Of a stretch of DNA of 64,000 nucleotides, positions 5,333-15,024 are shown in pieces (position 1 is the first letter of the stretch; each line of letters begins with the position of its first letter). The position numbers and the translations under genes are program-made. The notes under the pieces were generated by a model. That model made no database searches and had not been told where the DNA came from. It saw only the letters and a list, made by a program, of their open reading frames with translations. The stretch lies in the NCBI GenBank assembly GCA_964019335.1, contig OZ025736.1, positions 62,001 through 126,000 of the forward strand, written 5' to 3'. Source of the DNA: Diplonema japonicum. Its lineage: Eukaryota > Protista > Euglenozoa: Diplonemea.

Positions 5333-5435
5333 ACCTTTAAAAAAAAAAAAGACATTTAAGGGTACCTGCGGTATGTGACAGGACGCCTAAAAAAAAATGC
5401 GACTTGATTATAGTGGAGAAATGTTGGATGCTAAA

Positions 5436-5775
5436 CACATCCAACACCCTTGAAGCCTCCCAAATCCCTGTGGTCCCGTAGAAAGTAAAAGTGGAGAGGT
5501 AAAGAAAGCTCAGTGTTGAGCAAATAAAGAAAGTGAAGAGGTAAAGAAAGCTTTGCTTTGAAGGGAGAGGGGCCACAGAGGCATTGAGACAAAAAAAAAA
5601 AGAAAAAAAAAAAAACTCACATGAAAAGAAAAAAAAGGAGGGGGAAAAAATGCGACTTTTAGAAAATAAAATTTTAGTGGGGAAATGTAGGATGCGACAC
5701 ATCCAACACCCTTGAAGCCTCCCAAGTCCCTGTGGTCCCGTAGAAAGTAAAAGTGGAGAGGTAAAGAAAGCTCAG
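5436..5775. repeat. Direct repeat of ~78 bp (5436-5513 and 5698-5775)
   Basis: acatccaacacccttgaagcctccca..gtaaagaaagctcag occurs twice about 262 bp apart, downstream of the first PARP gene. Confidence 0.85.
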
Positions 5776-5906
5776 ATTTGAAAATAGAGAGAGGGACCAC
5801 AGAAGCACTTCGAGTTTAAAAAGAAAAATACTCTCACATCGGGGATAGTAAAAGTGGAGAGAATGTAAAAAGAAAAAAAAAGAAAAAAAAAGGGGGGGGG
5901 AACGTC

Positions 5907-7160
5907 TCAAGCAGTGTAAGTAATTAGATACTCAGGGTAGCCTCGACCATTGGAATAAACCATGTAAACCTGTGTGCCGGCCGTGATGCCTGAAACAGAG
6001 TCATATCTACGAACAGAATCTTGCGCGCCGGACTTAACACAAGGGGGAATCACAAGGCTCGAATCTGTGTTCTTTCCATAATCCTTGCAGTTTCCAACCA
6101 AAACAGTGGCAAGGAGCATCTGTTTGTGTGTTGGAGCTGCCGGATCACTAGTTGCATAGGAGTGTGAGTAGCTAGCTGTGGTGGAAAAGTAGGTTGCGCG
6201 ACCCCAAAGACCATTGTTTGCGAACCTTGTGTCAAAGCCGTCTTGGCCGTCGTAGATAAGCTTCGGTTGGGCCCGACCCGTTCCGTGAAATAGTTTGGCG
6301 GTTCTGACCGTGACCCCGTTGTTGGCCTCCATTCTCTTCTTCTCGCTTACAAAGTAAGCCCACAGCATTTTGTTCTGTATTCTTGTAACGCTCACGATCT
6401 TTGCCTTTGTCATCGTCTTACTGAACGCATTGGCCACGGAGTCGTACTCCTTGCTCCCTTGGGGGATGTCCACCTCCTCCAGGTTATTCTTTTGCGGTTT
6501 CCACGTTTTCGGATACGGTGAAACGGCTTTGACGTGCGCGAACTCACATTTTGCCCCCGCTTTGCAATCCCCCGCTGCGTAAAATATGCAGATTTGTTTC
6601 GGGATTGGTGCTGCCACTTTTCTTTTGTCTTCCAAGCTGTGCGGAAACTCACATTTTGCCCCCGCTTTGCAATTCCCTGCTGCGTAATATCTGCAGATTT
6701 TCTTCTGGGTTTGTTCTGTTGGTTTTCCTTTGTCTTCCAAGCTGTGCGGAAACTCACATTTTGCTCCCGCTTTGCAATCCCCTGCTGCATAATATCTGCA
6801 GATTTTCTTCAGAGCCGGTTCTGGTACCTTTTTATTCTCTTCTATGCTGTGCGGAAACTCACATTTTGCTCCGGCTTTGCAATCCCCTGCTGCGTAATAT
6901 CTGCAGATCTTCTTCTGAGCTGGTTCTGGTACTTTTTTTTTCTCTTCTAAGATGTGCGCGTACTCGCACGTCCACGCTTTGCACTTCCCTGTTGAGAAAA
7001 ACCGGCAGATTTCTTTCTGTGCTGGTTCAGCTGCTTTCCCCTTTTTTTCTAAGATGTGTGCGAACTCGCACTTGGCCCCCGCCGTGCACTCCCCTGCTGC
7101 ATAATATCTGCAGATTCTTTTCTGTGTTGGCCCTGCTACTGGTTTGGCACCGTTAGACAT
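5907..7160 (-). CDS. Six CCCH zinc fingers + PARP catalytic domain (ZAP/PARP12-like mono-ADP-ribosyltransferase), copy A
   Basis: Repeated C-x7-C-x5-C-x3-H units (one is C-x7-C-x4-C-x3-H). ART motifs RIQN, LFHGT, GRATYFS, YDSV and YPEYLITY. Confidence 0.92.
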   Translation of the reverse strand: MSNGAKPVAGPTQKRICRYYAAGECTAGAKCEFAHILEKKGKAAEPAQKEICRFFSTGKCKAWTCEYAHILEEKKKVPEPAQKKICRYYAAGDCKAGAKCEFPHSIEENKKVPEPALKKICRYYAAGDCKAGAKCEFPHSLEDKGKPTEQTQKKICRYYAAGNCKAGAKCEFPHSLEDKRKVAAPIPKQICIFYAAGDCKAGAKCEFAHVKAVSPYPKTWKPQKNNLEEVDIPQGSKEYDSVANAFSKTMTKAKIVSVTRIQNKMLWAYFVSEKKRMEANNGVTVRTAKLFHGTGRAQPKLIYDGQDGFDTRFANNGLWGRATYFSTTASYSHSYATSDPAAPTHKQMLLATVLVGNCKDYGKNTDSSLVIPPCVKSGAQDSVRRYDSVSGITAGTQVYMVYSNGRGYPEYLITYTA

Positions 7161-7330
7161 ATTCTTTTTATTTTCTTTTCCGTTTTGTTTACCCTGTTTT
7201 TCTTTTCCTTGTCTTTTCCTTTTTTTTTTCCCCCCATGCTGAATTTAGAAAACGAAGAGGGGGGAAAGAGGGCTTTAAAAAAAAAAAAAAAAAAAAAAAA
7301 ACAAACAAAAAAGAACAAATCGATCTTTTA

Positions 7331-7517
7331 ACGTCAAGGTGACAAGTCAAACGGCGCTCAGCACGACCACCACAGTCGGCTCCCAGAAGCCAAATGCGAT
7401 ATCCATGTTACCCCTGTTTTGAAAGGTCTAGTTGCTCTGACGCTTGGTGGTGTGACATGCACCAGTCATTCTGGCAGACTTCCCTGAAATGACTCGCTTA
7501 AACCCGTCTTGCTGCTC
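7331..7517. repeat. Dispersed repeat with conserved ends, related to 45665-45931
   Basis: Shares acgtcaa.gtgac..aagtc...gcgctc at the left and cagacttccctgaaatgactcgctt...acccgtc...ttgctgc at the right with 45665-45931. Confidence 0.55.
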
Positions 7518-8313
7518 TCTGAAAAAAGAAAGTATGAAGATACTTCGGGGACGTGGGAGTACGTACGACCCCGGCAGTCCCTATAACAAAAAAAAAACTC
7601 AAAGTACAAGACAAGCCCTCCGCTAGAGGACCGCCCTATGGGAGGGGGGCCCTACTAAATCCTGAGGACGCAGTAAGTAAAAGGAGAAAGACACTTCCTC
7701 AGGCCGTTTTTAGTGCTTGCGAAGAGCTCCAAGCGGTACCTCAATCAGGTCATCAACAAGTAGTTATCAGGCAGCTCACTGTTAAAATTAATAAACTATA
7801 AGAAGAAAGCTTGAAATAAATAAAAGAAAAAAATAACAGCAATAAAAAATAAATAAAAATGAAATTTGATTTTAGTGGTAACACCAGAGCCAGGTGAGAC
7901 CACCTCAACTTGTTCGATGTAATGGATAACTTGTACATCTAGAGAGCGTGAGTTACTGAAAGAAAAACTCGATAAAATTTCAGTGGCATGGAGGGGGGGG
8001 GGGGGGGGGGGTGCTCACTGTGAAAAAGAATAAAAAGAAAAAAGAGCAAAAATATGCCAACCGCACTACGTTGAGGTGTGTGGTGTCATCTTAAGGCGAT
8101 GCCAAGGGAGGGCTTCATGTACCGGGTCTTGAATACTGTAAAAAAATAAATAAAAAAAAATGAAAAAGCGTTGGACTGCCAAATGTATGAGCTAGCTGTC
8201 CGGACATTTCTCACTTTCTTTTACAGAAACAAGGTATGAAAACAAATTAGTAAAGGTTGCAAAATATGTTTATTTCAAAATACGGGGGAGGAGGGGGGAA
8301 GGGGGAGAAAAGC

Positions 8314-9726
8314 TCAAGCAGTGTAAGTAATTAGATACTCAGGGTAGCCTCGACCATTGGAATAAACCATGTAAACCTGTGTGCCGGCCGTGATGCCTGA
8401 AACAGAGTCATATCTACGAACAGAATCTTGCGTACTGGAGTCAACGCAAGGGGGAATCACAAGGCTCGAATCTGTATTCGTTCCATAATCCTTGCAGTTT
8501 CCAACCAAAACAGTGGCAAGGAGCATCTGCTTGTGTCCTGGGGCTGCCGGAGCATAGGAGTGTGAGTAGCTAGCTTTGGTGGAGAAGTAGGTTGCGCGAC
8601 CCCAAAGACCATTGTTTGCGAACCTTGTGTCAAAGCCGTCTTGGCCGTCGTAGATAAGCTTCGGTTGGGCCCGACCCGTTCCGTGAAATAGTTTGGCGGT
8701 TCTGACCGTGACCCCGTTGTTGGCCTCCATTCTCTTCTTCTCGCTTACAAAGTAAGCCCACAGCATTTTGTTCTGTATTCTTGTAACGCTCACGATCTTT
8801 GCCTTTGTCATCGTCTTACTGAACGCATTGGCCACGGAGTCGTACTCCTTGCTCCCTTGGGGGATGTCCACCTCCTCCAGGTTATTCTTTTGCGGTTTCC
8901 ACGTTTTCGGATACGGTGAAACGGCTTTGACGTGCGCGAACTCACATTTTGCCCCCGCTTTGCAATCCCCTGCTGCGTAAAATATGCAGATTGCTGCCAC
9001 TTTTCCTTTGTCTTCCAAGCTGTGCGGAAACTCACATTTTGCCCCCGCTTTGCAATTCCCTGCTGCGTAATATCTGCAGATTTTCTTCAGAGCCGGTTCT
9101 GGTACCTTTTTATTCTCTTCTATGCTGTGCGGAAACTCACATTTTGCCCCGGCTTTGCAATCCCCTGCTGCATAAAATTTGCAGATTTGCTTCGGGATTG
9201 CCACTCTTCCTTTGTCTTCCAAAATGTGCGAAAACTCACATATCGCTCCCGCTTTGCAATCCCCTGCCGCATAAAATTTGCAGATTTGTTTCGGGGTTGC
9301 CACTTTTCTGTTCTGTTCTAAGTAGTGCGAAAACTCACATTTTGCTTCGGCTTTGCAATCCCCTGCTGCATAATATCTGCAGATTTGTTTCGGGGTTGGT
9401 TTTGCAATTTTCCCGTTCCTTTGTAAGCTGTGCGGGAACTCACATTTTGCTCCGGCTTTGCAATCCCCTGCTGCGTAATATCTGCAGATCTTCTTCTGAG
9501 CTGGTTCTGGTACTTTTTTCTCCTCTAGGCTGTGCGCGTACTCGCACTTGGTCCCCGCTTTGCACTTCCCTGTTGAGAAAAACCGGCAGATTTCTTTCTG
9601 TGTTGGTTCAGCTGCTTTTCCCTTGTCTTCTAAGATGTGTGCGAACTCACACTTGGCCCCCGCCGTGCAGTTTCCTTTCTGTGTTGGTTCTGCTGTTGGC
9701 TTGTCACCGTTAGTCGTATTCCCCAT
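8314..9726 (-). CDS. Seven intact + one truncated CCCH zinc fingers + PARP catalytic domain, copy B
   Basis: Tandem paralog of 5907-7160. The PARP domain is almost identical while the finger array differs. Confidence 0.92.
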   Translation of the reverse strand: MGNTTNGDKPTAEPTQKGNCTAGAKCEFAHILEDKGKAAEPTQKEICRFFSTGKCKAGTKCEYAHSLEEKKVPEPAQKKICRYYAAGDCKAGAKCEFPHSLQRNGKIAKPTPKQICRYYAAGDCKAEAKCEFSHYLEQNRKVATPKQICKFYAAGDCKAGAICEFSHILEDKGRVAIPKQICKFYAAGDCKAGAKCEFPHSIEENKKVPEPALKKICRYYAAGNCKAGAKCEFPHSLEDKGKVAAICIFYAAGDCKAGAKCEFAHVKAVSPYPKTWKPQKNNLEEVDIPQGSKEYDSVANAFSKTMTKAKIVSVTRIQNKMLWAYFVSEKKRMEANNGVTVRTAKLFHGTGRAQPKLIYDGQDGFDTRFANNGLWGRATYFSTKASYSHSYAPAAPGHKQMLLATVLVGNCKDYGTNTDSSLVIPPCVDSSTQDSVRRYDSVSGITAGTQVYMVYSNGRGYPEYLITYTA

Positions 9727-9986
9727 TTAATTTTATTTTTCCGCTTTCCCCCCTGTTTTTTTCTTTTTTTTCCCCATGCTGAATTCAGAAAACATGAAGA
9801 GGGGGGAAAGAGGGCTAAAAAAAAAAAAAAAAAAAAAAAAAAAGTATGATGATAATACGGGAGTGGGAGGGGAAGGGGAAGATATTTGATACACCACTGT
9901 TTTTTCTTCTTTTCTTTTCTTTTTTTTTTTTTTTTTTTTTTTTATAAATTTTCTTTTTCTTTTTCTTTTTCTTTCCCCCCCCCCTT

Positions 9987-12900
9987 TCATTCATCTTTCG
10001 GCTTCTTACTCTTTTTCTCTTTTTTCTTTTTTTCAACTTTTCTCTTTTTCTTCTGTTCCGCACCCCCCTCGAACTTCCGCTTCTTCTTCTTATCCTTCTC
10101 CGCTTTCTCCTTTGTTTTTTCACCGGCACCACTGAGATATTTCAACAACACCCCAACATGCTGTCTAGAAGGTGGCGCATCTGTCAATGCATGGGCTTTC
10201 TGGATACTTACGATACAGGAAACAAAGTCGCTAGGGGTAGCAGGAGGAGTTTCGCCCAAGAACTTCGACAAAACGTTTAAAAGAACGGTAGCGGCAGAGA
10301 AGAACAACGCAGCGTTCGTTGTAACCTGCTCGCCAAGGGTGTGGATGAAAGAGGTCACCGAGACCCATGCGGTCCGGAGGTCCCAAATAATATTGTGAGA
10401 CTGGAAGTTTTCGTCAAGGTTGAGCAAGGCTATGCTCACCATCGACAAAAGCCTGGCTTTGTACTCCCATGTTTTTTTCTGAATAGCAGAACGCGCGTCA
10501 CCAGTGGCCGACATAGTTAATGTACATGCTGTGCTGACAATGGGAACCAACAGCTTCAACTGGTTCAGCATGACATTGGGGATCACCGCCATGCCTGCTT
10601 CCAAGGTTCGGACTGAAACGTCTCTTACCTTCTCCGGCGACAGCGGGGATTGTAAAACGGTCAAGCAGCCTTGCATTACACCCGATTTTACCAACGCACC
10701 GATGCTCCTTCCGCATCGTGCCGTTGACATTGACCAGATGATGTTTTGCGTGCTTTGCATTGCGAATACTTGCATTCCACCGGATTTCTCGGGCAGAACA
10801 ACATTATCGCCAAACGGCCAGTCGCCCCTCCGTGTGTATGGGAACTTCAATAAATACTTCGTGACGGACTGATGTGTGACACCTGGACGGTACACAGCTT
10901 CACACGCTGCCGACAGAAACCCTGCTATGCTGTTCGGAAGCTTGCATGTCTCCTCCCAACACGAGTTCTTGATATGCTCCAGTACAAGTGCGAACGGGGT
11001 TCTTGAAGGAACCACAACAGCCAACGCCCCCATTGCCGTGTATGAAAGTTCACGGACCTCGGTGTTCTTGCTGGACAAACCCTTCACGAGTAGCGGGATG
11101 AACCCTTGTAATGTCAAACGACGGACTTCTGGTACCGTAGGTGGTGTTCTCGACACACAAAGCGTCAAATGTGCAGCCAGAACCAACGTGACGTACCTTG
11201 GGTCGAGAAGGGTAGAGTCATCCTCCACTGCAGTCGGGTCAGTGGGGTATCTGGAAAGCGTTTTTTGTATCAGTTTGTCGCCGAACGTCCCCGCGAGCGT
11301 TTGCGTCCATAAAGGGTCCGGTCTCCCCGGGGTTTTTGGCGCGTTGGAGCCTGCTTGGTAATGGTACTCCGGCAACTTTTTCTTGATGACAGCCCATCTT
11401 TCCTGATCATCCTTCCCCAGTGTCCCGTTGTAACCCCTTACGTCGTCCTGCTCATATGTGTTCACAGTTTCCTGTTCATGTTTCTTCTCCATTGTCATAA
11501 CGGCTGTTTTTGACATGGGTGTGTATTGGCCCCATTTCTTAGGGGTTTCAAGAAGCGTGATGCAAGATTCGTGCGATTTTTCGATGTTGCGAACCGCCTG
11601 CAATTTGTCAGCGTTCGCAACATCCTTCCCGGCGACGCGGAGGAGCGGGGAGCCTGGTATCCTCTGTTGCTTCAGAGGGTTCTTCACAGACAGCATGTCA
11701 TTGTACAGTTTTAAAAGACATGTGTTGAAGAAGTAAGGGTCTGGTCCGGACATCCAAGCAACGACTTCTTCAGGTGATAGGGGTTCAAGGCAGGGTACGA
11801 TTGTAACGGAGGCGATGATGGAGCGCACGAGGACCACGCAGGCATCAATGAGGAACGGATCGCCAGTTTTAGATTCTTTTTCGGATTTGTAGAAATCGAC
11901 AATGCGGGTGAGGAGGGTACGATCCTTGTCGTCGCCGGCCTCGCCCAGCGGGGTGAGGTACGTTGTGGTCTTGATGCTGGTGTCGTGCGCAAGAATTTGA
12001 AAAAGCATCAAAATCGAGATTTTCGAGAGTTTATCGGTATCCAACCGGCTAGGGAAAAGCTTCACCAAGTTCACCCCAGAGAAGAACGAAGGAAGCTCGA
12101 TTTGAACCACCCTCAGAACCGTCAGCAGCCGTTCGAACCGGAAAACGTCTTGCAAAGTCGGTTCACGAGAAGGGGGAAGCTTCAAAGCAAGAAACACACC
12201 AGCATGCGGAAGCCTTCCGGACAAGATGAACCCCAGCTGAGGAAGGAAATCCTTGGATTCGATAAGATCCGGGTTTTGCTGTTGAAACGTTTTCTGTCGA
12301 ACGTCGACTGCGGTGACAAGCCGCACCACAGATCGGAACTTCTTCACCGCGAGCATGACCACCTCCATCGCTTGCACGACAATTAACTGAACATCATGTT
12401 TCAACAACCCAGACAAGGCAGACCCGACAAAACTAGGCAGAACGATATCCGCAACGGATCCCGGGGTTAGCTCAAACGTGTTGACGCCTCTCCAGTTTCC
12501 ATTGTAAAGATATCCCCGCTTCAGAGAAATAGGCAGCGGTGCCTCAAGAACCATGATAATGACATCGAGAGCGGCGATGAGCTCCAAGGAATCCTGATTT
12601 TGCTGCAGGGAAAGCACGTTTTGAATATGGTTCACATAATGCGTTGCGAGCGACGGCGCAAGCGACAGAATTTTTCTGGCGAGCCTGCGGTGGGAAATAT
12701 ATTTGTGGGGCGACGACGCCTTCAGAATGTGCAGCAGAACATGATTCGGGACAATGGTGGCAGTGGGGTCATACGGTATTTCAGGAACGGCCAAAGCGGG
12801 GACTATCTTATCCAGCAAGATTGTCTCTGCTTTCTCGGTTTTTTGCAAGAGGTTTGTCACCACATCCGCAACACCGTTGCGTTCAAAGGCGTGGGCACGC

Positions 12901-13571
12901 CTAGAACGCATGACGCTAGGAGTACACAGTAGCTTCCCTACACCTTCCAAAATTTCTTCCCTTACATCCTCGCTGTCCTCATGCAGAGTGGAACATAGCG
13001 ATGTTAGGAAATTTTGCGATCCCAGCGCAATACCGCATGAGACTTCGTCCCCTGACTGTGGGTACGAGAGGAGGTATTGAATGCCAGCTGCTCGAAGGTT
13101 TCTGTCGTAGTTCGCGCGTTTCTTTTTCCAAGCTGCTTCGGGCCCGATCCATGGTCCTTTAATGACCGGCTTCAACCTGTGGTGCAGCAGTGCTGGTGAG
13201 AATCTGTTGATTTCTGTTAAAAATTCTAGGATGCCTTTGCAGCTGTTTTTTCCTCGTTCTCCTGCCAGTCCCGCTGTGAAGAACTGCCCGTGGTTTGTTA
13301 GAACTGAGTGCAGAACGGAGAACAGTCTGCCTTCCTCTGACCCGATGCCCATTGCTGCGCAAAGACAGCCCAGAACATTGGTCTGATTCACGCCCCCCAT
13401 GTGCCCGGCTACTTCTTTCATCTCCGGGCTCACGTTCAGCAATTCGGACAAGACCTCCTTACCGCCGTCTTGTTTAAACTCATCTGACAGTACCTCCAGG
13501 CCCTTTCCCACCTCTGCTTTGTCACCTGTTAGCAACACGCATATTTTCGAGACTTTTAGAGGAGCGGTCAT
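9987..13571 (-). CDS. URB1: Nucleolar pre-ribosomal-associated protein 1 (URB1/Npa1)-like
   Basis: ~1190-aa helical protein. Npa1-like RNLRAAGIQYLLS segment, NopRA1-like LLDPRYV...LVKGLSSKNTEVRELSY segment and a Lys-rich tail. Start reassigned to MTAPLK, because the upstream ORF extension is homopolymer. Confidence 0.7.
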   Translation of the reverse strand: MTAPLKVSKICVLLTGDKAEVGKGLEVLSDEFKQDGGKEVLSELLNVSPEMKEVAGHMGGVNQTNVLGCLCAAMGIGSEEGRLFSVLHSVLTNHGQFFTAGLAGERGKNSCKGILEFLTEINRFSPALLHHRLKPVIKGPWIGPEAAWKKKRANYDRNLRAAGIQYLLSYPQSGDEVSCGIALGSQNFLTSLCSTLHEDSEDVREEILEGVGKLLCTPSVMRSRRAHAFERNGVADVVTNLLQKTEKAETILLDKIVPALAVPEIPYDPTATIVPNHVLLHILKASSPHKYISHRRLARKILSLAPSLATHYVNHIQNVLSLQQNQDSLELIAALDVIIMVLEAPLPISLKRGYLYNGNWRGVNTFELTPGSVADIVLPSFVGSALSGLLKHDVQLIVVQAMEVVMLAVKKFRSVVRLVTAVDVRQKTFQQQNPDLIESKDFLPQLGFILSGRLPHAGVFLALKLPPSREPTLQDVFRFERLLTVLRVVQIELPSFFSGVNLVKLFPSRLDTDKLSKISILMLFQILAHDTSIKTTTYLTPLGEAGDDKDRTLLTRIVDFYKSEKESKTGDPFLIDACVVLVRSIIASVTIVPCLEPLSPEEVVAWMSGPDPYFFNTCLLKLYNDMLSVKNPLKQQRIPGSPLLRVAGKDVANADKLQAVRNIEKSHESCITLLETPKKWGQYTPMSKTAVMTMEKKHEQETVNTYEQDDVRGYNGTLGKDDQERWAVIKKKLPEYHYQAGSNAPKTPGRPDPLWTQTLAGTFGDKLIQKTLSRYPTDPTAVEDDSTLLDPRYVTLVLAAHLTLCVSRTPPTVPEVRRLTLQGFIPLLVKGLSSKNTEVRELSYTAMGALAVVVPSRTPFALVLEHIKNSCWEETCKLPNSIAGFLSAACEAVYRPGVTHQSVTKYLLKFPYTRRGDWPFGDNVVLPEKSGGMQVFAMQSTQNIIWSMSTARCGRSIGALVKSGVMQGCLTVLQSPLSPEKVRDVSVRTLEAGMAVIPNVMLNQLKLLVPIVSTACTLTMSATGDARSAIQKKTWEYKARLLSMVSIALLNLDENFQSHNIIWDLRTAWVSVTSFIHTLGEQVTTNAALFFSAATVLLNVLSKFLGETPPATPSDFVSCIVSIQKAHALTDAPPSRQHVGVLLKYLSGAGEKTKEKAEKDKKKKRKFEGGAEQKKKRKVEKKKKEKKSKKPKDE

Positions 13572-15024
13572 TTTTTTTTTTTTTTTTTCTCTCCCCCTTC
13601 CCTCCCCCTCCCTCTTTTTTTTTTTCTTTTTAGAATTTTTTGAAAAAGCGGAATAGAAGAAACACAAAAAAAAGAGGGGTGGGGGAAAAAAAAAAAGAAA
13701 AGAAAAAAAAAAACCCGAGAACCAAAAAAGAGAAAAGAAAAAAGAAAGAGGGTGGTGGGTGGTGGGGTTCAAGGTAGGTTGTTGGTCGGGGGGGGGAGAG
13801 AGGGTGCCTCTTGGAGTCAATAAAGGGGGGATCGGAGTGCAGAAGGTTTATCGAACATAACATCTTTTTTTTTTAAAGTTCTCCCCCCCCCCCCCCCCCC
13901 CGGTAGGCAGTATTTCTATGATGGTAGGATGCAGCTATATGGATAAAAAAGGGGAGGGTGGGGGGTTTTTTTTTTTTTATTTCCCTTCCCATTTTTGATT
14001 CTCGAACACTTAAAAAAGAAATAACGGAGGTACAGCTGACGTGTTGAAAAGGTGAAAAAAAAAGAGAAAGAAAGGGAGGAAGGAACATGGGAGGGGTGGC
14101 ATGGCGAAAGGGTGGGGGGGAGTGAACAAAGTGACCCCGACAGCCAGGAGAAGAAGACAAGAAGAGAGAACCTTCAAAATTCGCTCTCTTCCCTCTGTCT
14201 TTCTGTTGGCGCCAGGGCTTCTATAAGTAAAAAAAAAAAACAAAAAAAAGGGGGGCGGTTTAAAAAAGAAAAGAAGAAAGCAAAAAAGAAAGAGGAAAAA
14301 AAAGGGGGGGGGTGAAAGAAAGAAGAGAGGCGGGCGTCCACACATTACTCTTTTTTTTTTTTTTTTACAAACTTGTGAAAGTATTAAAAAAAAACTTTTA
14401 AAAAAACGGGGGAAATAAAAAAAAAAAAGAGAAAAGGCAACCCTGAAGGCCCCATTGGCCTTGCAGCGTTAAGGTCTTAGAGAGATAATCGAGGATTACT
14501 TCCTTTGGGGTGGAGAGGGGTGTCTTTCCCCCTTCTTTTTTTTTTAAAAACTTTCTTTTTTTTTCCCCCCTTCATTTCCTTCCAGCTTCTTTTTTTCCCC
14601 CCCTTTCTCTTTCGGTACCTACCCCCTTCATAAAAAAAAAAAATACCAAGGGAAAAAAAGGGGGAAAAAAAGGTACACAATAGAAGGGAAAAAAAAAAAC
14701 TTTGCTTTGGGGATCAGAGAAGAGAAGGGTAAGACAGAATCGTCTTATGGTAGAAGGTAAAAATTTAATGAGAAAAAAAGGGGGGGGGAAAGGGAAAAGC
14801 TGTAGGGAACCATCACAAAAGGGGAACAGGGGGAAAGGGAAAACAGGAGGGGTTGGGGGGGGGAAAAAAATGAAAAAGAAATAGTTTACAAAGGGTTTTT
14901 TTTTTCTTTAAAAATATCCCCTCCCAGATATTGTCTCTATATTTTTATTTTATTTTTTTTTGTCGCTTGACACCATACACCACCGCCTCTTACATTTTTT
15001 TTTTTCACCCCCCTATTTTCAGTT

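Follow-up and report, generated by a model that had tools for sequence, protein, structure and literature searches.

A tandem pair of CCCH zinc-finger PARP genes in the diplonemid Diplonema japonicum, whose architecture very probably arose separately from that of animal PARP12, ZAP and PARP7

The 64,000-nucleotide (nt) stretch of Diplonema japonicum DNA analyzed here, referred to as the window, carries two adjacent genes encoding proteins in which an array of CCCH zinc fingers is followed by a PARP catalytic domain. A scan of the window for open reading frames (ORFs) showed that both genes are intact, intronless and complete on the minus strand. Gene A lies at 5907-7160, with its ATG at 7160 and its stop codon at 5907-5909, and encodes 417 residues, as judged from the ORF, Pfam and Trinity transcripts. 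Gene B lies at 8314-9726, with its ATG at 9726 and its stop codon at 8314-8316, and encodes 470 residues, as judged from the ORF, Pfam, transcripts and Logan contigs. The PARP cores of the two proteins are 97% identical. The initial annotation of this DNA had reported two adjacent paralogs with a near-identical PARP core in a protist, and was correct on both counts. The window belongs to contig C89 of a 62.5-Mb assembly of one strain, from which all genome-wide counts given below were taken; the published genome of D. japonicum YPF1604 is 62.3 Mb (PMC13598402).

The finger arrays were delimited by regular expressions, unit alignment and Tandem Repeats Finder (TRF). In gene A, six units (A1-A6) occupy residues 16-209 (6534-7115, minus strand), while the gene B array consists of a relic, B0, and seven full units, B1-B7 (8932-9675, minus strand). 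Pfam recognized both as zf-CCCH (PF00642), with E values of 6e-27 (93 bits) for gene A and 7.5e-36 (122 bits) for gene B against a cut-off of 20.5 bits. The spacing is C-x7-C-x5-C-x3-H throughout five fingers of gene A and seven of gene B. The remaining gene A finger, A2 (6909-7010, by regular expression and unit alignment), has lost one codon, giving C-x4-C, and a Gly has changed to Trp; the N-terminal relic B0 (9592-9675, by unit alignment) has an 8-codon deletion that removes Cys1. Regular expressions and unit alignment thus agree with the earlier count of six fingers versus seven plus one truncated.

The units are 33-35 residues long (99-105 nt) and are joined by linkers of 11-16 residues rich in Lys, Glu and Pro, in keeping with the unit length and differing linkers described before. 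TRF found a period of 105 nt in gene A (5.8 copies, 79% matches) and periods of 99 and 105 nt in gene B. Variation within the fingers is concentrated at the three positions following Cys1 (RYY, RFF, KFY or IFY) and at the residue preceding the His (A, P or S), again as had been noticed from the sequence, and the unit alignment showed that the linkers are more variable than the fingers. When the array was compared with proteins of solved structure, the best matches were the tandem fingers of TTP/TIS11 (2e-7) and CPSF30 (2.5e-6), followed by TMA46, MBNL1 and Yth1, with E values ranging to 5e-4; no ZAP chain was among these matches. The Pfam model of the PARP12 finger, PF25261, matched partially (profile positions 16-42 of 45) and more weakly than the generic zf-CCCH model. 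No donor of the finger unit was identified in the genome, where the best non-self match to the array is 36% identical. From the similarity to the RNA-binding proteins TTP, CPSF30 and MBNL, we infer that the fingers bind single-stranded RNA.

The PARP domain of gene A (residues 226-417; 5910-6485, minus strand) was located with phmmer against the PDB and with Foldseek of an AlphaFold2 (AF2) model, and that of gene B (residues 282-470; 8317-8883, minus strand) with Pfam and by alignment to gene A. The Pfam PARP model (PF00644) gave E values of 1e-14 and 3e-15 for genes A and B, with scores of 54.9 and 56.7 bits that exceed the cut-off of 26.7. The closest structures by phmmer were PARP14 (2.7e-24), PARP15 (1e-22) and PARP12 (2.8e-21), corresponding to 84-89 bits for PARP14 and PARP15 and 79 for PARP12; PARP10 (2.8e-10, 43 bits), the tankyrases (about 40 bits) and ZAP (1e-8, 38 bits) followed at a distance. 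In the AF2 model of the whole protein, which was built from a 10-row alignment, the PARP core had a predicted local distance difference test (pLDDT) score of 70-95, and Foldseek matched it to PARP15, PARP12 and PARP14 with E values near 1e-13 and a template modeling score of about 0.70.

Alignment with PARP14 showed that His292 (6285-6287) and Tyr324 (6189-6191) of the catalytic triad are retained in gene A and that Val398 (5967-5969) sits where PARP14 has the triad Leu and true polymerases have a Glu. The nicotinamide pocket also keeps Gly293, Ser332 and Tyr335. Gene B has the same motifs, with an H-Y-V triad of His348, Tyr380 and Val451. A His-Tyr-aliphatic triad is the signature of mono-ADP-ribosyltransferases (mono-ARTs) (PMC2964712), and the catalytic domain of both genes is of the type expected of such an enzyme.

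Animal proteins with a CCCH and PARP layout usually also carry a WWE domain. No WWE domain was found by Pfam in either D. japonicum protein, and none was located on contig C89 when the whole genome was searched for WWE in six frames. Only about 16 residues separate the His of the last finger from the first residue homologous with other PARP domains, so a hidden WWE domain is excluded. The initial description of a CCCH array joined to a PARP-type mono-ART without WWE is therefore borne out by the Pfam scan and the six-frame search, as far as predicted domains can tell. The label ZAP/PARP12-like that came with it is apt for the architecture and fails for the family, because a WWE domain and a ZAP-type finger domain were both looked for and neither was found. 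The likeness to PARP12 and ZAP would accordingly be a functional analogy, not family membership. A language-model feature search placed the PARP12, ZAP and TiPARP clusters nearest, with a score of about 0.8, a result that was taken as a lead only and not as evidence.

The two arrays were compared unit by unit at the nucleotide level. The arrays are colinear, with A1 corresponding to B0 (90% identity), A2 to B1 (95%), A5 to B6 (99%) and A6 to B7 (98%). A3 (6804-6908) is a chimera, its first 53 nt or so matching B2 exactly and its sequence from about nt 39 onward matching B5; it is therefore a recombinant bridging B2-B4, as one unequal crossover or deletion would give. Units B2-B4 (9187-9489), which have no equivalent in gene A, and A4 (6699-6803), which has no partner in gene B, represent insertions or deletions on the scale of whole units. 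The possibility was considered that the order of the fingers had been shuffled, as the initial annotation had it, but the unit map is colinear and the differences are gains and losses of whole units, and the idea was rejected. Of the further proposal that the system is modular and rapidly recombining, recombination at the unit scale was indeed found, while the word rapidly has no backing in one strain with the substitution ratios given below.

The two genes are homologous from a point some 140 nt ahead of the ATG down to the stop codon, where the similarity ends sharply; the 3' flanks are unrelated. Sliding identity is 100% over the 300 nt of 6204-6503 (8602-8901 in gene B), which encode the N-terminal part of the PARP domain, and 99% onward to about 6703, compared with 92-93% in the last third of the PARP domain and 80-96% in the units at the N-terminus. 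Not one substitution occurs in the 110 codons that follow the last finger, whereas the number of synonymous substitutions per site (dS) is 0.107 and that of nonsynonymous substitutions (dN) 0.038 in the remainder. This disparity suggests that gene conversion homogenized the middle of the two genes, and the identical tract is its probable footprint. The PARP domains differ by a 3-codon indel and six amino acid substitutions, and the differences that remain in the domain cluster in loops between the conserved beta-strands. The pairwise dN/dS ratio is 0.15-0.6 in the finger units, and in the PARP part it is about 0.3 to 0.35, on small counts, which indicates that both copies are under purifying selection. 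Positive selection on the fingers was considered and rejected, since the substitution counts are too low and every ratio stays under 1.

These comparisons bear on the proposal that the proteins are antiviral or anti-transposon sensors, whose arrays recognize foreign RNA and are diversified by an arms race. An analogous architecture is found in PARP12 and ZAP, the number of fingers varies between the paralogs, and the loop location of the residual PARP-domain differences would also fit. However, dN/dS values of 0.15-0.6, albeit on small counts, give no sign of positive selection, and the arrays are colinear rather than shuffled. Moreover, the neighbors are housekeeping genes, for example one for an Npa1/URB1-like protein, and no partner genes suggesting an antiviral or anti-transposon role were found near the pair. 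The CCCH proteins of the related kinetoplastids are mostly ordinary mRNA regulators. A sensor of this kind was considered unlikely, and an antiviral or anti-transposon role for the pair is at present pure speculation.

Because repeat arrays are easily misassembled, the gene pair could in principle be a single gene with a collapsed or wrongly expanded array, an artefact that the initial annotation had itself allowed for. Five Trinity isoforms of D. japonicum in EukProt (EP01064), assigned to one 'gene' and 409-515 residues long, are mosaics of genes A and B, as might be expected of such an artefact. Furthermore, isoforms P0001, P0167 and P0002 have an extra Lys-Gly ('KG') in the A5/B6 linker (6590-6640 and 9000-9035) that is absent from the genome and from the exactly matching Logan contigs; it may reflect an allele, a culture difference or assembly noise. 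Taken together, however, the isoforms hold both gene-specific N-termini and the units B2-B4 found only in gene B, and genes A and B are therefore both transcribed. Logan contigs from three separate studies matched 8047-8342 and 9118-9379 with zero mismatches in all three, exact matches in the former region reaching to 8529, and a contig in one of the displayed runs matched 6992-7194 equally well; these contigs report the presence of copy-specific sequence, not RNA as opposed to DNA, transcript ends or level. With unrelated 3' flanks, distinct N-termini and the indel and six substitutions in the PARP domains, the copies are readily told apart. The gene pair is not an assembly artefact, and the single-gene explanation is left with a negligible probability. 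In addition, run X11, labeled as another organism, held near-exact pieces of the arrays at a low share and low depth; these probably represent the same species in that sample and not an orthologue.

The PARP domain was used for an exhaustive HMMER scan of 1.84 billion representative proteins, which gave 339 matches below 1e-30. The best 150 of these 339 score at least 139 bits, above any human PARP. A CCCH motif was present in none of the best 150, transcripts of D. japonicum itself aside; WWE, macro-WWE, ankyrin, multi-PARP and bare-PARP architectures are represented among them. The closest relatives are diplonemid PARPs with RanBP2 fingers, ankyrin repeats or C4 ribbons, and protist WWE/macro PARPs are also among the nearest. 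D. ambulator P0012 has five RanBP2-type fingers and a PARP domain (53% identity), Rhynchopus euleeides P0159 a RanBP2 finger, zinc ribbons and a PARP domain (48%), and P0014 about nine RanBP2-like fingers (51%), while P0013, from an ENA assembly, has C4 ribbons in the layout of a D. japonicum paralogue, C67. All of them, C67 included, have the H-Y-V triad and the same junction motif, P-x-x-W...NL, which lies immediately past the N-terminal module. In the alignment, Val398 is invariant, and Pro217, Trp220 and Asn226 are nearly so.

A first tree, in which C62 and C17 formed very long branches, was discarded as unreliable and rebuilt without both. In the resulting maximum-likelihood tree, genes A and B are sister to the RanBP2/ankyrin group with support of 92/77, and this assemblage joins C67 and P0013 at 81/32; the large WWE/macro set stands apart. 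No other CCCH-PARP of this kind was retrieved in word-indexed searches of 5.8 billion proteins, which included a profile of the clade. Within the D. japonicum genome, no similar array or CCCH-PARP combination was found elsewhere; among its PARP-domain genes, at least 30 in number, only these two have CCCH arrays.

Of the paralogues in the genome, the nearest is C67 (L033:1495-3297, minus strand; G000:C67), which encodes 600 residues with an H-Y-V PARP domain that is 41% identical. At the N-terminus lie four or five C-x2-C...C-x2-C zinc-ribbon repeats, followed by a long unannotated middle region. Another gene, C62 (L054:1480-3132, minus strand; G000:C62:194871-196508), encodes 550 residues with about ten tandem RanBP2-type fingers. 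The repeat has a period of 111 nt with 84% matches, and its best PDB matches are ZNF265/ZRANB2 and RBM10. The C-terminal PARP-like domain falls under the Pfam PARP threshold and has a degenerate Y-H-F triad, and the C62 protein appears to be a 'dead-PARP', ZAP-like analogue of the CCCH-PARP pair.

In view of C62, the CCCH proteins might likewise be RNA-binding adaptors in which a catalytically inert PARP domain serves as a ZAP-like scaffold or as an ADP-ribose-related interaction module. C62 indicates that activity is lost in such proteins of the same genome, and the third triad residue of the pair is Val, as in ZAP (PMC2964712). On the other hand, neither copy, nor any member of the H-Y-V clade, has lost the His, Gly, Tyr, Ser or Tyr of the NAD+ pocket, and human H-Y-I/L enzymes are active mono-ARTs. 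The 110 codons free of substitution and the dN/dS of about 0.35 in the rest of the domain also speak against an inert domain, which we regard as improbable.

The CCCH-PARP pair is very probably lineage-specific and convergent with animal PARP12, ZAP and PARP7. This independence was judged by the ranking of bit scores, by architecture and by finger type. It agrees with the suggestion in the initial annotation that the proteins were assembled separately from the animal ones, given that the nearest relatives are diplonemid, that the fingers resemble those of TTP, CPSF30 and MBNL, and that the CCCH-WWE-PARP clade is confined to animals (PMC2964712, PMC8102003). For the whole, the explanation we favor, and hold to be probable though well short of certain, is that these are real, tandemly duplicated and expressed CCCH-PARP genes for an RNA-targeted mono-ART, which originated within a diplonemid clade and converged with animal PARP12, ZAP and PARP7.

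Under this explanation, the fingers would bind single-stranded RNA like beads on a string, their number and identity setting how tightly and how selectively they bind. The transferase would in this way be recruited to RNA-protein complexes and would there mono-ADP-ribosylate itself and neighboring proteins. The setting would probably be post-transcriptional control or the biology of stress or RNA granules; the organism depends to a large extent on post-transcriptional regulation. The catalytic domain would derive from the diplonemid H-Y-V PARP clade, in which the N-terminal module appears to be interchangeable among RanBP2 arrays, ankyrin, C4 ribbons and CCCH. The CCCH array may have grown by tandem amplification of one 105-nt unit, and after the gene was duplicated, unequal crossover would have altered the number of units and gene conversion homogenized the middle of the genes.

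Several points weigh against this explanation. The Val at the third triad position is shared with ZAP, a catalytically dead protein, although ZAP additionally lacks the His. Finger A2, with C-x4-C, and relic B0 may be unable to fold, and the AF2 model of the array was uninformative (pLDDT below 35). The support for the sister relationship of genes A and B is only moderate, and the tree was built without the animal clade-3 sequences PARP7, 11, 12, 13, 14 and 15. Finally, the sensitivity of the searches is limited, and an orthologue may exist in an unsampled diplonemid.

The genome has at least 30 PARP-domain genes, five PARG genes, at least seven macro-domain genes and at least 12 WWE genes. 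The PARP genes include a WWE-WGR-PRD PARP, two vault-type PARP4-like genes and several double-PARP genes (on C104, C35, C33, C10 and C36). The related kinetoplastids have a single PARP only. Diplonemids could possess a family of 'programmable' mono-ARTs, in which a conserved H-Y-V module is re-targeted by swapping and resizing arrays of fingers for single-stranded RNA, CCCH in D. japonicum and RanBP2-type in its relatives. In the furthest version of the idea, the array would position the enzyme at RNA ends and the RNA itself would be ADP-ribosylated, a reaction reported in vitro on phosphorylated RNA ends for the catalytic domains of human PARP10, PARP11 and PARP15; this must be considered a long shot.

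A block upstream of the two genes, at 7161-7300 for gene A and 9727-9860 for gene B (minus strand), is 84% identical between the copies. In both, a run of T residues about 27 nt long is followed by a conserved stretch rich in C and T, an AG and an upstream ATG. From this ATG starts a short Lys-rich ORF, which ends 4 nt ahead of the main ATG in gene B and overlaps the main ATG in gene A. The block is likely to be a polypyrimidine tract with a trans-splice acceptor, and the short ORF may be regulatory. The long ORFs of the window are almost all on the minus strand, which fits the polycistronic gene organization of euglenozoans. The upstream neighbor at 9987-13820 (minus strand) encodes the Npa1/URB1-like nucleolar pre-ribosomal protein of 1277 residues; a low-complexity N-terminal extension within its stop-to-stop frame is probably non-coding. 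In the 3' flank of gene A, a 96-nt direct repeat with 92% identity lies at 5435-5530 and 5697-5792. The depth of Logan contigs over it is extremely high, suggesting a dispersed repeat, and a second spot of very high depth lies between the genes at 7533-7673.

The published view is that CCCH-finger PARPs, namely PARP7, PARP12 and ZAP, are an animal invention, and PARPs that combine CCCH and WWE (clade 3E) have been described in animals only (PMC2964712, PMC4245714, PMC8102003). Citarelli et al. (2010) found PARPs with WWE, with or without CCCH (clade 3E), limited to animals (PMC2964712). Perina et al. (2014) recorded ZnF_C3H1 in PARP12-like proteins of the lancelet and vertebrates and noted ZnF-RBZ PARPs in Rhizaria (PMC4245714), and Gonçalves-Carneiro et al. 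(2021) dated the ancestor of ZAP and PARP12 to a time before cnidarians branched off (PMC8102003). The literature search found no paper on diplonemid PARPs, and the diplonemid PARPs with RanBP2 fingers are likewise undescribed in the searchable literature. The animal proteins are linked to antiviral defense and RNA regulation, and the same pairing of a finger array with a mono-ART would have arisen separately in a euglenozoan, in a clade whose other members carry a different type of RNA-binding finger, RanBP2. This would support the general idea that evolution repeatedly couples ADP-ribosylation to RNA recognition. Moreover, the pair offers a simple, WWE-free natural system for asking how finger number and identity direct a mono-ART, and a large diplonemid ADP-ribosylation toolkit is documented alongside it.

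Compared with animal PARP12, ZAP (PARP13) and TiPARP (PARP7), the D. japonicum pair has the same layout of CCCH fingers and PARP domain but lacks WWE. Its arrays are made of six to eight nearly identical tandem fingers of one spacing, whereas the animal proteins have one to five dissimilar fingers within a folded N-terminal domain. The fingers of the pair match TTP, CPSF30 and MBNL, not ZAP, the catalytic domain scores no better on PARP12 than on PARP14 and PARP15, and the host is a euglenozoan protist. The diplonemid RanBP2-finger PARPs P0012, P0159 and P0014 have the closest catalytic domains (48-53% identity) and are alike in the H-Y-V triad, the junction motif and size. They too have N-terminal tandem small zinc fingers of a type that binds single-stranded RNA, but these are of the RanBP2 (C4) type, whereas the CCCH type was found only in D. 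japonicum. Human PARP14 and PARP15 are the best matches of solved structure by both sequence and fold, and both are H-Y-L mono-ARTs; they carry macro domains, together with WWE and KH in PARP14, and have no CCCH array. TTP/TIS11, CPSF30 and MBNL resemble the pair in the spacing and sequence of their fingers, but they have two to five fingers and no enzyme domain.

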